Below are positions 17,687 through 61,415 of a stretch of 64,000 bases of DNA, one piece after another; within the stretch, counting starts at the first letter, position 1; every line of letters starts with the position of its first letter. The position numbers and the translations under genes were made by a program. The DNA lies in the NCBI GenBank assembly GCA_977020255.1, contig CDROCS010000253.1, positions 744,001 to 808,000 of the forward strand. The letters are read 5' to 3'. A model generated the notes under the pieces. The model saw only the letters and a list, made by a program, of their open reading frames with translations, made no database searches and had not been told where the DNA came from. The DNA comes from Obrimoposthia wandeli. Taxonomy: Eukaryota.

Positions 17687-17858
17687 GTCGCGGTGGCGAC
17701 CACACCCAAGGGGCGACGTACCGCCGCGCCTCCCCTTGGAACCCCTGCGACGCCCTACTCAGCAGAACATTCAATCACCAACTAGCGTAAACCTCGATTC
17801 CTGCCGATTTATCGTCCATGAACAGCGGCAGCCCTTTGGGTGTCGTCGCCACCGCGAC
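17687..17858. repeat. 172-bp GC-rich element with 28-bp terminal inverted repeats (REPIN/MITE-like)
   Basis: 17687-17714 and the reverse complement of 17831-17858 match at 26/28; internal hairpin CCAAGGGG..CCCCTTGG at 17706-17739. Confidence 0.8.
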
Positions 17859-18142: not shown

Positions 18143-19399
18143 TATCAAGTAAAATTAAACATACCTAGGAGCTTATTACCCAAATTCTAGGATGAATTAA
18201 TAAACTACATCGTATATTCTTTGAAGATTTACCAAGAAGTGCATTTTATGGAATTTAAGGTGTGATGGAGTATTAGCCATTCATTAAAATTAAAATGGTG
18301 GGATTATCGTTGTTTTAATTCAAGCCTGAATTAATGTAATAAGTGCTAGGCCAGTAATTTATTACAAGCCGAGAGTGTCGTTCGCCTGCTGAGTGCTTGA
18401 TGCTGACAAAACTCATTAAGCACATCTGCATGACCTACGGCACCATGAAACCTTTTGGTAAATTGTGTGGTTAATATCAGCCAATTTTCAGGACTTATAT
18501 TTAATCTAGTTAGTATTTCAGGTTGATTTTCTTCTATATAACCACACTTATCTGCACGAATACAGCGGCCTGTAACGTCAATAAGCTCAAGGTAATCATG
18601 GATATTAAAAGTAAGCCCTTGCCTTTTATCTTTATGCGCGTTACCTACAAAATTTAAAAGATTGCTCGGTTGTTTACCTTGTATTGCCGCTTTAATTCGT
18701 CGTTGAATACTGGTATAGCTTGATTTTTCTGGAGTGTGTGCCATTTTAGCTCTAACGGGGTTTAAATCGACATAGGCCATGCAAGCAATAATGGCTGCGT
18801 CATCGAGTAAGGCTTGTGATTTAAAACGGCCTTCCCAAAATCTACCCGTGCAATTATCTTCACCATTGGCTTTTCGTGCTATGCCCTCGTTAAGTATGCG
18901 CATAAGCCAACTGATATCGGTTAATCGCTTGCGATACACTTCACCAGTTTGTTCAACCATCGTTTGTAATGGCTCGATAAGTTCATCACCACGCACATAT
19001 TGCTGGGTTAACAAGGTGCCTTTGAATAACTGATGCCAACGGCTAATCACCTCAAACGTAGACCAAGACCGCGCTTTATCTGCATCCACATAAAGTACCA
19101 AGTGACTGTGATTACTCATCACTGCATAGGCGCACACATCAATGGCAAATACAGAGCCTAAGAACAACAACTTATCTTCAACCCAAGCGCGTCGGTGTTC
19201 AAAACTTTGACCCGTAACTTTATCTTTACCACATAAAAAAGCCCTACGAACACAGCGTGAAATGCAGTGATAATAGGGCGTGTCGATTAAACTAACTTGT
19301 CTTTTTCTTGCAACCGCCATGTGAACCTCAAACTAAAAAATTGATGGTTAATTAATTATAGTTCAGAGGCAAGGCATTTTCCATTAGAGTGGGTGTCTT
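18113..19399 (-). mobile_element. Putative element around the Y1 transposase, bounded by 12-bp imperfect inverted motifs
   Basis: AAGACAGCCACT (18113-18124) and AGTGGGTGTCTT (19388-19399) match at 11/12 in inverted orientation; no clean target duplication. Confidence 0.5.
18346..19320 (-). CDS. HUH Y1 transposase, RAYT-like (IS200-related)
   Basis: YYHCISRCVRRAFLCG, MSNHSHLV (HUH), FWEGRFKSQ and AYVDLNPVRA (catalytic Tyr). Confidence 0.88.
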   Translation of the reverse strand: MAVARKRQVSLIDTPYYHCISRCVRRAFLCGKDKVTGQSFEHRRAWVEDKLLFLGSVFAIDVCAYAVMSNHSHLVLYVDADKARSWSTFEVISRWHQLFKGTLLTQQYVRGDELIEPLQTMVEQTGEVYRKRLTDISWLMRILNEGIARKANGEDNCTGRFWEGRFKSQALLDDAAIIACMAYVDLNPVRAKMAHTPEKSSYTSIQRRIKAAIQGKQPSNLLNFVGNAHKDKRQGLTFNIHDYLELIDVTGRCIRADKCGYIEENQPEILTRLNISPENWLILTTQFTKRFHGAVGHADVLNEFCQHQALSRRTTLSACNKLLA

Positions 19400-21069: not shown

Positions 21070-21132
21070 AGTTCTTTGCTTCGGCCTATCTCACGTTTAA
21101 TATTTTTTAGCTCTTTACTTTCTAGTAAGATC

Positions 21133-21157
21133 AAAAAAGGCCGCGTTAGCGACCTTC
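21133..21157 (-). terminator. Intrinsic terminator of the str-operon tuf
   Basis: GGTCGC-TAAC-GCGGCC plus T tract on the minus strand. Confidence 0.85.
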
Positions 21158-21201
21158 TTTATTAGATAGTATATCTTACATCTATTTGTTGTTATTCAAC
21201 G

Positions 21202-21263
21202 GATTAACAAGGCGTGGACACGGAGTTGGCGTTAGTCAATGAGTATCCGCAACGCTGTTAATC
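21202..21263 (-). repeat. Structured 3'-UTR module, copy A
   Basis: Nested stems around GGAG-TTGGC-GTTA-GTCAA-TGAGTA (plus-strand reading); paralogues at 42768 and 58289. Confidence 0.75.
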
Positions 21264-21280
21264 CTAAGAAAAACTACAAA

Positions 21281-22465
21281 TTAAGCGATGATTTTAGATA
21301 CAACACCAGCACCAACAGTACGACCACCTTCACGGATAGCGAAGCGTAAACCTTCGTCCATCGCTACTGGGTTGATTAGCTCAACAACAAACTTAAGGTT
21401 GTCGCCAGGCATTACCATTTCAACACCTTCAGGAAGCTCTACAGCACCTGTGATATCTGTTGTACGGAAGTAAAACTGTGGACGGTATCCTTTGAAGAAT
21501 GGAGTATGACGACCACCTTCATCTTTCGAAAGAACATATACTTCAGATTCGAATTTAGTGTGTGGTAAAATTGAACCAGGAGCACATAATACTTGACCAC
21601 GTTCAACATCTTCACGCTTAAGACCACGTAGAAGAACACCACAGTTCTCGCCAGCACGACCTTCGTCAAGAAGCTTACGGAACATTTCAACACCAGTACA
21701 AGTTGATTTTTGTGTATCACGGATACCAACAACTTCTACTTCTTCACCAATTTTGATGATACCACGTTCAACACGACCAGTAACAACTGTACCACGACCT
21801 GAGATTGAGAATACATCTTCGATAGGCATGATGAATGCACCGTCGATTGCACGCTCTGGCTCTGGAATGTAAGTATCAAGTGCATCAGCAAGTTCGATAA
21901 TTTTAGATTCCCACTTCTCATCGCCTTGAAGAGCGCCTAAAGCAGAACCTTGAATTACTGGTAAATCATCACCAGGGAAGTCATATTCAGAAAGAAGTTC
22001 ACGAACTTCCATTTCTACTAATTCTAATAATTCTTCATCATCAACGACATCACATTTGTTCATGAAAACAATAATGAATGGAACACCAACTTGGCGAGAC
22101 AATAAGATGTGCTCACGTGTTTGTGGCATAGGACCATCTGTAGCAGCAACTACTAAGATAGCGCCATCCATTTGTGCAGCACCAGTGATCATGTTTTTGA
22201 TGTAATCGGCGTGACCAGGACAATCTACGTGTGCATAGTGACGTGCTTCAGTATCATATTCGATGTGAGAAGTATTGATTGTAATACCACGTTCACGTTC
22301 TTCAGGAGCATTATCGATTTGTGCGAAATCTTTAACTTCACCACCGTGAACTTTAGTTAATACAGCAGAGATAGCAGCTGTTAGAGTAGTTTTACCGTGA
22401 TCTACGTGACCGATAGTACCAACGTTAACATGCGGTTTTAAACGTTCAAATTTTGCTTTAGCCAT
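21281..22465 (-). CDS. tuf: Elongation factor Tu (str-operon copy)
   Basis: [13 protein letters not shown] and NKCD; 394 aa. Confidence 0.99.
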
Positions 22466-34741: not shown

Positions 34742-34772
34742 AAAAAGGCCGGTGACGTTTAAATCACCAGCC
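34742..34772 (-). terminator. rplL-rpoB attenuator hairpin
   Basis: GGCTGGTGA-N-TCACCGGCC-TTTTT as in the E. coli rplL-rpoB spacer. Confidence 0.8.
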
Positions 34773-34808
34773 ATGCCTTTTCAGGCAAATAATCTGTTTA
34801 AAAACAGA

Positions 34809-42259: not shown

Positions 42260-42336
42260 TGGCAGGGGTGGAGAGACTCGAACTCCCAACCATCGGTTTT
42301 GGAGACCGCTGTTCTACCAATTGGAACTACACCCCT
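42260..42336 (-). tRNA. tRNA-Trp (CCA)
   Basis: AGGGGTG acceptor stem, CTCCAAA anticodon loop, GTTCGA T loop, CCA end. Confidence 0.97.
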
Positions 42337-42605: not shown

Positions 42606-42698
42606 ACTGATATTTTATAGGCTATTGTGAGGTAATCAATCAATTTACTTAATATGTCACTCAATAAATGACTTAGCTGTTTATCAAATTTCAGGCAC

Positions 42699-42725
42699 AA
42701 AAAAGGCCGCGTTAGCGACCTTTTT
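42699..42725 (-). terminator. Intrinsic terminator of the tRNA-linked tuf
   Basis: Same GGTCGC-TAAC-GCGGCC hairpin as 21133-21157. Confidence 0.85.
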
Positions 42726-42767
42726 ATGTGATATTAATTTCTAATATGCATTTGCTTAGTAACTGAT

Positions 42768-42831
42768 GATTTAACAAGGCGTAGGCACGGAGTTGACGTG
42801 AGTCAATGAGTACCTACAACGACGCTAAATC
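42768..42831 (-). repeat. Structured 3'-UTR module, copy B
   Basis: GGAG-TTGAC-GTGA-GTCAA-TGAGTA inside GTAGGCAC/GTACCTAC stems. Confidence 0.75.
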
Positions 42832-42846
42832 GAAGTTAGTGGCAAA

Positions 42847-44031
42847 TTAAGCAATAATTTTAGAAACAACACCAGCACCAACAGTACGACCACCTTCACG
42901 GATAGCGAAGCGTAAACCTTCGTCCATCGCTACTGGGTTGATTAGCTCAACAACAAACTTAAGGTTGTCGCCAGGCATTACCATTTCAACACCTTCAGGA
43001 AGCTCTACAGCACCTGTGATATCTGTTGTACGGAAGTAAAACTGTGGACGGTATCCTTTGAAGAATGGAGTATGACGACCACCTTCATCTTTCGAAAGAA
43101 CATATACTTCAGATTCGAATTTAGTGTGTGGTAAAATTGAACCAGGAGCACATAGTACTTGACCACGTTCAACATCTTCACGTTTAAGACCACGTAAAAG
43201 AACACCACAGTTCTCGCCAGCACGACCTTCGTCAAGAAGCTTACGGAACATTTCAACACCAGTACAAGTTGATTTTTGTGTATCACGGATACCAACAACT
43301 TCTACTTCTTCACCAATTTTGATGATACCACGTTCAACACGACCAGTAACAACTGTACCACGACCTGAGATTGAGAATACATCTTCGATAGGCATGATGA
43401 ATGCACCGTCGATTGCACGCTCTGGCTCTGGAATGTAGTTATCTAATGCATCAGCAAGTTCGATAATTTTAGATTCCCACTTCTCATCGCCTTGAAGAGC
43501 GCCTAAAGCAGAACCTTGAATTACTGGTAAATCATCACCTGGGAAATCATATTCAGAAAGAAGTTCACGAACTTCCATTTCTACTAATTCTAATAATTCG
43601 TCATCGTCAACCACGTCACATTTGTTCATGAAAACGATAATGAATGGAACACCAACTTGGCGAGACAATAAGATGTGCTCACGTGTTTGTGGCATAGGAC
43701 CATCTGTAGCAGCAACTACTAAGATAGCGCCATCCATTTGTGCAGCACCAGTGATCATATTTTTGATATAATCGGCGTGACCAGGACAATCTACGTGTGC
43801 ATAGTGACGAACTTCAGTATCATATTCGATGTGAGAAGTATTGATTGTAATACCACGTTCACGCTCTTCAGGAGCATTATCGATTTGTGCGAAGTCTTTA
43901 ACTTCACCACCGTGAACTTTAGTTAATACCGCAGAGATAGCGGCTGTCAAAGTTGTTTTACCGTGATCTACGTGACCGATAGTACCAACGTTTACATGTG
44001 GTTTATTACGTTCAAATTTTGCTTTAGCCAT
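42847..44031 (-). CDS. tuf: Elongation factor Tu (tRNA-linked copy)
   Basis: 394 aa; four residues differ from the other copy. Confidence 0.99.
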
Positions 44032-44113: not shown

Positions 44114-44189
44114 TGGTGCTGATAGGCAGATTCGAACTGCCGACCTCACCCTTACCAAGGGTGCGCTCTACCAACTGAGCCATATCAGC
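44114..44189 (-). tRNA. tRNA-Thr (GGT)
   Basis: Cloverleaf, TTGGTAA anticodon loop, CCA end. Confidence 0.97.
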
Positions 44190-44205
44190 ATTCATATACA
44201 AAGAT

Positions 44206-44234
44206 TGGAGCGGGTGGCGGGAATCGAACCCGCT

Positions 44235-44265
<31 letters not shown>

Positions 44266-44280
44266 GTATACGACACCCGC
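44206..44280 (-). tRNA. tRNA-Gly (TCC)
   Basis: GCGGGTG acceptor stem, CTTCCAA loop, CCA end. Confidence 0.96.
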
Positions 44281-44344
44281 TTTTCTATCAAGTTATCTCT
44301 GTTTTTTTGATCTATCTTATTTTTCAATAAGTATAAATCGAATA

Positions 44345-44429
44345 TGGTGGAGGGAGGTGGATTCGAACCACCGAAGGCTGAGCCGTCAGATTTACAGTCT
44401 GATCCCTTTGGCCACTCGGGAACCCCTCC
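44345..44429 (-). tRNA. tRNA-Tyr (GTA)
   Basis: Long variable arm, CTGTAAA loop, CCA end. Confidence 0.97.
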
Positions 44430-44490
44430 ACTTTAAGCCTATACCTTTTATCAAGGTACCTTATAAAAGCATCGCTTTAATAAGTATTAA

Positions 44491-44517
44491 TGGTGCCGAC
44501 TGCCGGAATCGAACTGG

Positions 44518-44559
<42 letters not shown>

Positions 44560-44566
44560 AGTCGGC
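44491..44566 (-). tRNA. tRNA-Thr (TGT)
   Basis: CTTGTAA loop, CCA end. Confidence 0.97.
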
Positions 44567-58239: not shown

Positions 58240-58288
58240 ATTTAACTATTTGGTATTTTCTTTAAGTGAAGTAATACTTTTTCTAGCA

Positions 58289-58325
58289 GGGAGCCTATGA
58301 CTATAGGTGAGTACTTCCAACAACG
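58289..58325 (-). repeat. Structured 3'-UTR module, copy C (core only)
   Basis: GGAG-CCTAT-GACT-ATAGG-TGAGTAC...CAACAACG. Confidence 0.6.
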
Positions 58326-58359
58326 AAAGAGTGAAACTTAACAACAAGAAAATTTCAAA

Positions 58360-60963
58360 TTAGGCTTCTACTTGCAAAATCACAGTGTTAGCTTTACTTG
58401 TGTATTCTTCCATTTTATCAAAGTTCAAGTAACGGTAAGTATCAGCAGCAGTCGCATCGATTTGAGACGCATACTCCATATACTCAGTAGGACTTGGAAG
58501 CTTACCTAAAATAGCACCAACACCAGCAAGTTCTGCAGACGTTAAGTAAACGTTTGCGCCATTACCTAAACGGTTAGGGAAGTTACGCGTAGAGGTTGAA
58601 AGTACAGTAGTATTATCACCTACACGTGCTTGGTTACCCATACACAGTGAACAACCAGGGGTTTCTACACGAGCACCAGCTCTACCAAAGATATTGAAGT
58701 AACCTTCATCTTTAAGTTGGGCACTATCCATTTTAGTTGGTGGTGTAACCCACATACGTGTTGGTAATGAACCGCCTTTCTTTTCAAGGAAAGTCTCAAT
58801 CAATTTACCAGCAGCACGGAAGTGACCTATGTTAGTCATACATGAACCGATGAATACTTCATCAATTTCAACACCACAAACCTCTGATAATAATTTCGCA
58901 TCATCAGGGTCATTAGGACAACAAACGATAGGCTCTTTAATATCAGCTAAATCAATTTCAATAATATGAGCGTATTGTGCATCTGCATCAGCTGTCATTA
59001 ATGAAGGATTAGCTAACCATTCTTGCATGCCTTTAATACGACGAGTAATAGTACGAACATCGCCGTAACCTTCACTGATCATCCATTTAAGCATAACAAT
59101 GTTAGACGTTAAGTATTCCGCAACAGCGTCTTCTTCAAGTTTGATTGAACAACCCGCAGCTGAACGTTCAGCAGAGGCATCAGATAACTCAAACGCTTGC
59201 TCAACAGATAAACCTTTAAGGCCTTCAATTTCAAGTACGCGACCAGAAAATTCGTTAACTTTACCTGCTTTCTCAACCGTTAATAAACCGTTTTTGATAC
59301 CGTAATAAGGAATAGCATGAACCAGGTCACGTAAAGTGATACCTGGTTGCATTTCACCTTTAAAGCGAACCAATACTGATTCAGGCATATCTAGAGGCAT
59401 AACACCTGTAGCGGCAGCAAAAGCAATTAAACCAGAGCCAGCAGGGAAAGAAATACCTAATGGGAAACGTGTATGAGAATCACCACCAGTACCTACAGTA
59501 TCAGGTAACAACATACGGTTTAACCAAGAATGAATAACACCATCGCCTGGACGTAATGAAACACCGCCACGATTCATCATAAAATCAGGCAAGGTGTGAT
59601 GGGTAATAACATCAACAGGCTTAGGGTAAGCTGAGGTATGACAGAAAGACTGCATCGTTAAGTCAGCAGAAAAACCTAAACAGGCTAAATCTTTCAACTC
59701 ATCACGTGTCATAGGACCGGTAGTATCTTGCGAGCCTACAGTGGTCATTTTAGGTTCACAATATTGACCGGCGCGAACACCTTCAACATTACAGGCTTTA
59801 CCTACCATTTTCTGTGCAAGGGTAAAACCTTTAGAAGATGTGGCAGGGTCAATTGGTGTTGCAAATAAATCGGTTGTTTCAAGGCCTAATGCTTCACGGG
59901 CTCGGCCGGTTAAACCACGACCAATAATAAGAGGAATACGTCCACCAGCCTGAACTTCGTCAAATAATACCGGGCTAAGCTTAAATGTTGAAATCACCTC
60001 ACCAGCCGCATTTTTAACAATGCCTTCGTATGGGTAAATGTCAATGACATCACCCATGTGCATTTTTTGAACATCTAATTCAATGGGTAATGCACCTGAA
60101 TCTTCCATGGTGTTATAGAAGATAGGAGCAATTTTACCACCTAAACAGACACCGCCACCACGTTTGTTAGGGATGCAAGGAATATCATCTCCCATGTACC
60201 ACAACACAGAGTTAGCCGCTGATTTACGAGAAGAACCCGTACCAACAACATCACCAACGTATGCTAATGGAATACCCTCTTTTTGAAGATCTTCAATTTG
60301 TTTGATTGGACCAATATGGCCGTCTTTTTCAGGGTTAATACCATCACGAGCAATTTTAAGCATCGCTTTAGCATGTAATGGCACATCAGGACGAGACCAA
60401 GCGTCTGGCGCTGGTGATAAATCATCAGTGTTTGTTTCACCAGTAACTTTAAATACTTTAACCGTGATTTTTGTTGCTACTTTTTCTTTTGATGTAAACC
60501 ATTCTGCGTCAGCCCACGCTTGCATAACTTGTTTGGCTGCAGCGTTACCTGCTTCGACTTTTTCTTGTACATCATGGAAGGCGTCAAACATGAGTAAAGT
60601 ATGTGATAATCCTTTAGCCGCTGTTGCCGATAATGCATCATCGTCTAAAAGATCAATCATTGGCTGAATGTTATAACCACCCAACATAGTGCCTAACAAT
60701 TGTGTGGCTTTTTCCGGGGTTAAGATAGTTGAAGTCGTTTCACCTTTAGTAACGGCTGCTAAAAATCCTGCTTTGATATAAGCGGCATCATCAACACCTG
60801 CGGGTACACGATTTGTTAATAAATCAATTAAAAATGCATCTTCACCAATAGGTGGGTTTTTAACTAATTCAACTAATGCTGCTGTTTGTTCAGCGTCTAA
60901 AGCTTTAGGCACAAGACCTTCAGCTGCACGTTCTGCTATGTGGTTACGATAATCTTGAAGCAC
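58360..60963 (-). CDS. acnB: Aconitate hydratase B / 2-methylisocitrate dehydratase
   Basis: GETNTDDLSP, SQDTTGPM, IGSCMTN and PGCSLCMGNQ; GTG start placed after the AGGTG RBS. Confidence 0.97.
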   Translation of the reverse strand: MLQDYRNHIAERAAEGLVPKALDAEQTAALVELVKNPPIGEDAFLIDLLTNRVPAGVDDAAYIKAGFLAAVTKGETTSTILTPEKATQLLGTMLGGYNIQPMIDLLDDDALSATAAKGLSHTLLMFDAFHDVQEKVEAGNAAAKQVMQAWADAEWFTSKEKVATKITVKVFKVTGETNTDDLSPAPDAWSRPDVPLHAKAMLKIARDGINPEKDGHIGPIKQIEDLQKEGIPLAYVGDVVGTGSSRKSAANSVLWYMGDDIPCIPNKRGGGVCLGGKIAPIFYNTMEDSGALPIELDVQKMHMGDVIDIYPYEGIVKNAAGEVISTFKLSPVLFDEVQAGGRIPLIIGRGLTGRAREALGLETTDLFATPIDPATSSKGFTLAQKMVGKACNVEGVRAGQYCEPKMTTVGSQDTTGPMTRDELKDLACLGFSADLTMQSFCHTSAYPKPVDVITHHTLPDFMMNRGGVSLRPGDGVIHSWLNRMLLPDTVGTGGDSHTRFPLGISFPAGSGLIAFAAATGVMPLDMPESVLVRFKGEMQPGITLRDLVHAIPYYGIKNGLLTVEKAGKVNEFSGRVLEIEGLKGLSVEQAFELSDASAERSAAGCSIKLEEDAVAEYLTSNIVMLKWMISEGYGDVRTITRRIKGMQEWLANPSLMTADADAQYAHIIEIDLADIKEPIVCCPNDPDDAKLLSEVCGVEIDEVFIGSCMTNIGHFRAAGKLIETFLEKKGGSLPTRMWVTPPTKMDSAQLKDEGYFNIFGRAGARVETPGCSLCMGNQARVGDNTTVLSTSTRNFPNRLGNGANVYLTSAELAGVGAILGKLPSPTEYMEYASQIDATAADTYRYLNFDKMEEYTSKANTVILQVEA

Positions 60964-61415
60964 GACATTCACCTTTTTATTGGAGACACTCGTCACTTTA
61001 GGGATGACTCGGTTAATAGAGAGCCAATTTAGGACAAAGCTTTTAAGTATCTAGGATTATAAATTCGTCCTAATAATACAATATTGTCGACACTTTTTGT
61101 TATTTGTGATTAGTTGTAGTGTTTATTTTCAATATTCACTTTTATTATAGTGTTTGTTTTTCAATTACTTGAATTATTTTTTGTTTTCAACTGTACGACT
61201 ATTATACTAGTCTATTATTCTTTGTTTTTAATATTGTCGGAAATGTTTCTATTTTTATTAAGGTTCGATTATGTAAAAAGTTAACAATTAGGCTTATTAA
61301 GATCGCTGCATGATTATAATTATAGTATAGGAGATAGGTGGTTTTCAGCGACTAGATGAATTTTAAACCTGCCAAGATAATCGTATTTTAGTCAGTCGCG
61401 AACTTGCATGGGTAT

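Follow-up and report, generated by a model that had tools for sequence, protein, structure and literature searches.

A dispersed palindromic repeat of about 120 nt placed directly behind stop codons in Colwellia and related bacteria

Long imperfect palindromes of the ERIC/IRU/YPAL type reside in transcribed intergenic regions of Enterobacteria and Vibrio, where they are located behind genes or between cistrons and are best conserved at their centre. Reportedly, they fold as long RNA hairpins able to alter the stability of the upstream mRNA. REP elements of E. coli positioned within approximately 15 nt of a stop codon are said to stall terminating ribosomes. Conserved bulges and mismatches are typical of the sites used by hairpin recombinases, as in the IS200/IS605, RAYT and attC systems; attC sites also feature conserved outer ends and are arranged in arrays beside an integrase. 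The ERIC/IRU/YPAL imperfect palindromes measure approximately 120-170 bp and are present in tens to hundreds of copies (family sizes in PMC2267715). Members of the CGTC-tagged REP superfamily are units of 20-40 bp comprising an 8-9-bp stem, a 4-5-nt loop, an unpaired CGTC tag and a short tail, and they have no associated transposase (PMC3733652).

The window considered here, i.e., the whole stretch of 64,000 nt that was analysed, covers positions 744,001-808,000 of C253, a contig of 4,677,312 bp and bacterial make-up within an assembly of 1.35 Gb and 6,912 contigs. C253 corresponds to a complete-looking, Colwellia-like chromosome of 4.68 Mb represented by a single contig, the assembly presumably being that of a eukaryotic host. 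An earlier note on the window had described a structured module at 21202-21263 and 42768-42831, behind the two tuf genes, and a further copy at acnB. The plus-strand letters quoted there for both tuf copies are exact. The stretch 21202-21263 is indeed part of the element, but the structure is larger, forming a palindrome of approximately 120 nt. For its description, the covariance model R1 was built from 27 aligned copies; it comprises 119 positions and 32 pairs and represents one hairpin. The acnB copy, which is outside the training set of R1, was recovered by this model as well. The tuf and acnB copies are members of one dispersed family of imperfect palindromes of approximately 120 nt (Table 1).

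Table 1. Repeat copies in the window, the genes upstream of them and associated terminators
Feature	Position in window	Strand	Basis
Repeat copy A, full model match	21172..21290	-	R1 85.5 bits, E 1.6e-17; folds as single long hairpin
Apical core of copy A, 27 nt	21219..21245	-	exact pattern match
Repeat copy B	42739..42856	-	R1 75 bits, E 5.9e-15; folded too
Apical core of copy B	42786..42812	-	exact pattern match
Repeat copy C, divergent, behind acnB	58247..58358	-	R1 48.3 bits, E 2e-8
tufA (EF-Tu), upstream gene of copy A	21281..22465	-	ORF; Pfam GTP_EFTU and domains D2, D3
tufB (EF-Tu), upstream gene of copy B	42847..44031	-	ORF of 394 aa; 3' end alignable with tufA
acnB (aconitate hydratase B), upstream gene of copy C	58360..60996	-	ORF; Pfam Aconitase_B_N, Aconitase_2_N, Aconitase
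tufA intrinsic terminator	21131..21158	-	read from sequence and seen in fold
tufB intrinsic terminator	42697..42724	-	identical to tufA terminator

The minus strand is the tuf sense strand for copies A and B and, as the earlier note had stated, both have the same orientation, with the stop codon on one side and a terminator (hairpin plus U-run, identical for the two genes) on the other. Copy A lies directly behind tufA and runs over its stop codon (21281-21283), copy B lies directly behind tufB and likewise runs over the stop codon (42847-42849), and copy C begins 1 nt past the acnB stop codon (58360-58362). The tufA terminator consists of a 6-bp G+C-rich stem, a 4-nt loop and a U-run; it is located approximately 40 nt beyond the repeat and was missing from the list of a simple terminator scanner. 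A 26-nt pattern over the common centre of copies A and B was matched twice in the window, compared to 0.00 matches expected from 100 shuffles. Both tuf copies fold as one long hairpin reaching from the stop codon to approximately 40 nt before the terminator, which is nearly the whole 3' UTR (93 nt, -27.1 kcal/mol, z-scores of -4.4 and -5.1). Covariation between the two copies was also correctly recognized in the earlier note: the 8-bp stem differs at two pairs, with both sides changed in each case. Furthermore, the outer stems are unlike in sequence and paired in both copies. The inner 5-bp stem had been regarded as fixed, but is not entirely so: copy A possesses a G·T on the plus strand, corresponding to a mismatched A·C on the sense strand of tuf. 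In copy C, the inner stem is wholly replaced and the 3' arm carries a 7-nt deletion.

The element differs from an intrinsic terminator in that no U-run follows it, and a separate canonical terminator is present approximately 40 nt further on behind both tuf genes. Within the element, one weak promoter consensus match was found, which is no more than shuffled sequences give. The Rfam 15 scan of the window at gathering score yielded only tRNAs and the Pseudomonas sRNA P26, the latter in the ribosomal-protein/rpoBC region (34746-34801, minus strand) with 36 bits, i.e., exactly the gathering score. The tRNA genes near tufB (42263-42336 and 44117-44566, minus strand; four upstream, one downstream) constitute the usual tufB neighbourhood in Gammaproteobacteria. 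Moreover, the window harbours a G+C-rich inverted doublet (17687-17858) that represents a repeat family other than the stop-adjacent palindrome. Its neighbouring ORF (18346-19320) had been considered RAYT-like, an assignment that was not upheld, as the ORF has no Pfam match and PF01797 is not found in the window.

Searching the assembly for the core pattern with up to three mismatches resulted in 31 matches, approximately 26 of which are spread along the whole of C253, compared to 0 matches for the reversed control. Application of R1 identified at least 45 copies in the assembly among 150 candidates scored. When one genome per bacterial species (GTDB) was scanned for the exact pattern, at least 120 stretches were detected; nearly all of those listed originate from Colwellia isolates or MAGs, and Thalassotalea, Cognaticolwellia, Pseudocolwellia and some Shewanella species were also represented, including S. 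hanedai with a copy of 82 bits. Within the GTDB family of the chromosome, R1 matches were obtained for 45 of 121 sampled genomes. Carrier genomes possess between 1 and 29 copies, with 30 candidates evaluated per genome, 29 therefore being a lower bound. Behind gcvP, Shewanella aquimarina (L039, 6260-6556) contains two tandem copies of the same orientation that are richer in G+C, and S. benthica and Shewanella sp. KJ2020 have a single orthologous copy at this site; the family therefore extends past the Colwelliaceae, at a conserved site. On C253, six copies are clustered within 57 kb (approximately 1,929,000-1,986,500). Two of these point in opposite directions on either side of yajC in the tgt-yajC-secD region, an arrangement that recurs in at least four more genomes of Colwellia. 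A second related strain is represented by near-orthologous copies on contigs C4478, C6288, C5123, C6140 and others, and many other contigs of the assembly carry bacterial Y1 transposases; the assembly therefore includes several bacteria.

A comparison with described repeat and RNA families had been proposed in the earlier note, and none of the families searched gave a match. Using a top-scoring copy and 11-nt words, blastn retrieved no match in 5,426 complete E. coli genomes, which presumably hold ERIC, REP/BIME and related repeats. The Rfam scan of four copy-bearing loci with E-values up to 10 returned, at the element, only chance-level matches far below gathering score. Full-text literature searches and repeat-survey papers contained no description of such a Colwellia repeat family. 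The stop-adjacent palindromes of Colwellia and relatives are accordingly a family without published description in the searched literature, of the same general kind as REP/ERIC.

The most conserved part of the element is an apical core of 27 nt, composed of a 5-bp stem capped by a 4-nt loop, an asymmetric internal loop (3 nt versus 4 nt) and a U·G pair. When 112 copies of other genomes were aligned to R1, the core columns showed a conservation of 90% or more, and the U·G pair was present in 109 of these copies. The arms show a loose consensus only and vary from copy to copy, yet stay complementary. For evaluation of the covariation, which the earlier note had suggested, the same 112 copies were compared to controls in which the 3' partners were slid by 1-3 columns. 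Standard pairs occupied 90.9% of the real cells versus 32-38% in the slid controls, and 815 cells were changed on both sides versus 158-238. Compensatory change was detected at 28 of the 32 pairs, and the observed score was reached by no shuffle. These results substantiate the proposal of a genome-wide repeat with strongly conserved pairing. Predicted hairpin energies range from -27 to -48 kcal/mol. Moreover, some copies end in AGT...ACT, and the consensus features a CGTC-like tetranucleotide right before the 8-bp stem, which starts with A/T.

In order to describe the genomic position of the element, flanking ORFs were called around 142 copies. A co-oriented upstream gene was present for 108 copies; for 104 of these, the distance between the end of its stop codon and the modelled hairpin base ranges from -6 to +23 nt, with +4 as the most common value. 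These 104 of the 142 copies begin approximately 0-10 nt behind the stop codon, on the sense strand of the housekeeping gene concerned and ahead of the following cistron or terminator. Among tandem gene pairs (n = 88), the median gap amounts to -0.5 nt to the upstream stop codon and 86.5 nt to the next start codon, the upstream gap being the smaller one in 86 pairs (p = 2.5e-23). Orientation in tandem contexts is strongly biased, with 88 sense versus 21 antisense copies; several of the latter represent the far partner in an inverted doublet, approximately 55 nt from a sense copy. Placement at gene 3' ends in the direction of the gene, which the earlier note had reported for the tuf copies, is thus a property of the family, and none of the outcomes listed in that note as a refutation was observed. 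The suggested specificity for tuf or very highly expressed mRNAs, by contrast, was not confirmed. The upstream genes have housekeeping functions and are often located within operons; they include tuf (twice), acnB, eno, guaB, groES, mreB, hisG, tgt, yajC, thiG, flgI, gspG, iscA, cysN, lapB, dapD and genes for an nqrF-like reductase and an acyl-CoA dehydrogenase, and gcvP in Shewanella. The 104 stop-adjacent copies are found behind just 37 ortholog groups, and the same positions are therefore occupied across many species. Within ortholog groups, the arms are as unlike as between unrelated copies, with pairing and core being kept.

Several accounts of this placement were considered. Replication direction as the cause of the orientation is less favoured than gene direction, the chromosomal copies following the gene in 32 of 36 cases and the replication fork in 28 of 35 (with rough replichore limits deduced from local GC skew), numbers that are too few to settle the matter. 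The stop codon as a specific part of the stem was rejected, because minimum free energy folds pair the stop codon or ORF end in 82% of copies versus 75% with ORF ends swapped among copies, which does not exceed chance. Likewise, the type of stop codon does not appear to be a target (TAA/TAG/TGA 75/25/2 beside elements versus 65%/29%/6% in the background, p = 0.10). Donation of the stop codon by a conserved AGTAA-type terminus was also rejected ('AG' before the stop codon in 15 of 98 cases versus 9.2% background, p = 0.07), and this terminus is at most a subfamily trait.

Based on these results, the element is best interpreted, with a probability of roughly 60%, as an ERIC/MITE-like dispersed palindromic repeat of approximately 120 bp forming a co-transcribed hairpin in the 3' UTR or between cistrons, rather than as a tuf-specific regulator. 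Given its position, the element would be transcribed together with the upstream gene, either as the 3' UTR or as the spacer to the next cistron. The resulting RNA hairpin would most likely represent a barrier to 3'-to-5' exonucleases and/or a double-strand processing site, and could in this way uncouple the mRNA stability of the upstream cistron from the downstream sequence. As the start of the hairpin is within the region covered by a terminating ribosome, translation termination may also be affected. From the sequence data we infer a role in mRNA stability or processing; contigs obtained from metatranscriptome runs originate from other organisms and cover only the coding part of tuf. Complementarity of the arms would be maintained at the DNA level, through templated arm-to-arm correction of quasi-palindromes or through selective pressure on a DNA hairpin or cruciform. 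Taken alone, a purely DNA-level account leaves the tie to stop codons and gene orientation unexplained, and an RNA function accounts neither for the equal conservation of antisense copies nor for the unfavoured G·U pairs. Furthermore, a near-invariant core amid fully diverged arms implies a sequence-specific constraint that a simple exonuclease barrier does not require.

An alternative is a dedicated cis-acting RNA, as proposed in the earlier note, the apex of which would be bound on the mRNA by a protein or nuclease, with the stems under selection for the RNA fold and the element having spread because it is useful behind many genes. A conserved apex combined with freely covarying lower stems is seen in many protein-bound RNA hairpins, the invariant U·G pair exists on the sense strand only, the core is kept at positions common to several species, and sense orientation and stop-codon adjacency are consistent with action on the transcript. 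The pattern of mismatches argues against this explanation. A transition converts a Watson-Crick pair as often into G·U as into A·C, and selection on an RNA fold tolerates the former and removes the latter. Mismatch cells comprise 70 G·U versus 95 A·C (63 versus 63 after exclusion of one semi-conserved C·A pair), and G·U is not enriched in the sense copies alone either (54 versus 73). Moreover, Watson-Crick pairing amounts to 88.4% in sense and 90.8% in the 19 antisense copies, and ranks of the model scores do not differ between both orientations (p = 0.82). Complementarity is therefore kept strand-symmetrically, in a DNA-like manner, and the pairing looks like DNA palindromy rather than the RNA-level selection for structure that the earlier note had assumed. 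In addition, close relatives are devoid of the element behind tuf, and it matches no Rfam family. A dedicated cis-acting RNA is therefore considered unlikely, although it has several features of the family in its favour.

Mobility without host function has to be considered as the next explanation, namely a selfish single-stranded DNA hairpin that would insert strand-specifically where DNA becomes transiently single-stranded behind the stop codon of a transcribed gene, or would survive at such places only, and whose core would be the site of a putative trans-acting enzyme. The DNA-type pairing fits this scenario, as do the conserved bulges and the mismatch, which resemble sites of hairpin-recognising recombinases, and copy numbers, which range from 1 to at least 29 in carrier genomes, with none in 76 of the 121 genomes sampled. 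Presence also varies at orthologous sites.

Behind tufA, the element occurs here and in the relatives G022 and G002. In G012, neither tuf gene is followed by it, and tufB of G002 lacks it too; at these sites the terminator begins approximately 25 nt past the stop codon. Downstream of tufB of G022, the 478 nt available contained no copy. Filled and empty tuf sites indicate that the element is gained or lost as a unit, and its absence behind tuf in close relatives indicates insertion rather than an ancestral tuf 3'-UTR module. Flanks of these filled and empty sites are too diverged for a target duplication or exact ends to be read.

Evidence for a mobilising enzyme was not obtained, however. Beside none of the copies was a Y1 transposase detected, and the sole PF01797 match of the chromosome (2,376,618) is located approximately 7 kb from the nearest copy (2,369,673). 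Candidate adjacent transposases were rejected, since the 111-aa and 385-aa ORFs flanked by copies encode YajC and Tgt, and ORFs of 389 aa encode acyl-CoA dehydrogenases. A transposase partner was not found, nor were terminal inverted repeats with target duplication as far as the diverged flanks could be read, near-identical recent copies within the genome were not seen, and BLAST returned no match among 72,556 plasmids and 50,697 phage records. Positions common to many species are also difficult to reconcile with a selfish element, which is thus regarded as rather improbable.

Two further observations concern the history of individual loci. Behind mreB of the Colwellia MAG DT_17 (L069), a chimeric element joined at the conserved core was identified, with a 5' arm of the L037 type and a 3' arm of the L164/L168 type, which points to recombination of alleles at the core as judged from the arm sequences. 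In the DNA run X1, the probable source sample, two contigs join the tufA terminator to the stop region, skipping 120-122 nt that correspond to the element; one of them joins 21156 to 21277, the shorter side of the joint being 25 nt. These contigs may originate from a co-occurring strain or from another tuf copy without the repeat.

A hairpin element placed by the end of translation was proposed as a further explanation, which is held to be slightly more doubtful still. In one version, the element would insert strand-specifically past stop codons, where the non-template strand could be exposed as RNA polymerase loses its trailing ribosome. In a domesticated version, it would serve as an 'operon punctuation' signal, the invariant apical motif being recognised by a putative dedicated protein. 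If true, either version would jointly explain sense orientation, stop proximity, well-expressed housekeeping genes, DNA-type pairing and the invariant asymmetric core.

Two remaining explanations are of minor importance. The 14-bp centre, consisting of two 5-bp half-sites 4 bp apart, could be read as a duplex site for a dimeric regulator of the CRP/FNR type, with the rest of the palindrome being incidental. The core has the half-site spacing of FNR-type regulators, some copies read as a perfect FNR-like box when compared to the consensus that we take to define such boxes, and a site of this kind would function irrespective of its direction, in agreement with antisense copies being equally conserved. 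It is nevertheless very improbable, because the half-sites change jointly with pairing kept (three pair types at two positions), which is needless for a palindrome read by a protein, because copies are located after genes and not in promoters, and because approximately 50 more paired positions and the conserved unpaired bases are left unaccounted for. Finally, likeness of copies A and B as a mere by-product of tuf duplication and gene conversion into the 3' flank, as the identical terminators might suggest, has a negligible chance of being the full explanation, being refuted by dozens of copies behind unrelated genes and in other genera. Gene conversion itself probably contributed at this locus: the tufB flank carries the terminator of the relatives' tufA type, and copy B resembles the copy behind tufA of G022 more closely than it does copy A. 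As far as these flanking sequences indicate, tufB probably acquired the element by conversion from a flank of the tufA type.

Interpretation as a co-transcribed dispersed palindrome has implications beyond the family itself. As 28 of the 32 pairs covary yet the mismatch spectrum is DNA-like, covariation-based RNA discovery can be misled by palindromic repeats. With dozens of copies per genome, shared gene positions and fully diverged arms, the family provides a natural test set for the question of how long palindromes stay complementary, whether through selection on RNA or through templated correction of the DNA. Its association with stop codons, for instance those of groES, mreB, tuf and eno, makes the family suited to the question of whether such repeats set differential expression within operons of cold-adapted marine bacteria. 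Moreover, the covariance model could be utilized for annotation of the element in Colwellia, Thalassotalea and Shewanella genomes.

Comparison with known systems reveals partial likeness to several of them. REP/BIME elements are also palindromic, mostly located downstream of coding regions of co-directional or convergent genes, and form inverted doublets. The CGTC-like tag and the 8-bp stem in the consensus recall CGTC-tagged REPs in particular; unlike these, the element measures approximately 120 nt, its 8-bp stem encloses a structured insert of 21 nt, and long outer arms are present. REPINs share the long hairpin of approximately 100 nt and the dispersed intergenic copies, but keep both ends (REPs) and vary in their mid-part, whereas the element keeps its centre and varies at the ends. 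Classical MITEs are defined by terminal inverted repeats, a target-site duplication and a related autonomous IS; the element forms an inverted repeat over its whole length and has both filled and empty sites, and a partner IS was not seen. Elements of the attC type are alike in keeping structure over sequence, in their conserved unpaired bases, and in being placed directly behind an ORF in fixed orientation. They differ from the repeat described here, the outer parts of which vary, the apex of which is conserved, and the copies of which are scattered behind housekeeping genes along a 4.68 Mb chromosome. With the stop-proximal REPs of E. coli, the element has in common that a stable hairpin begins within the footprint of the terminating ribosome; it exceeds them threefold in length and is a member of an unrelated family, and any effect on translation is putative here.

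The family is closest in kind to the long imperfect palindromes of the ERIC/YPAL type. It differs from these in its hosts, which are members of the Colwellia clade and some Shewanella species, in the much tighter distance of the element start to the stop codon, and in its strong sense bias. Likeness to YPAL, which the earlier note had pointed out, accordingly holds in kind; it does not extend to the sequence of ERIC, REP/BIME and related repeats, as judged from the search, which covered the E. coli genomes. What the element shares with ERIC, IRU and YPAL is the general design, namely a single hairpin of 119 nt with a conserved apex, dispersed in intergenic positions behind co-oriented genes.
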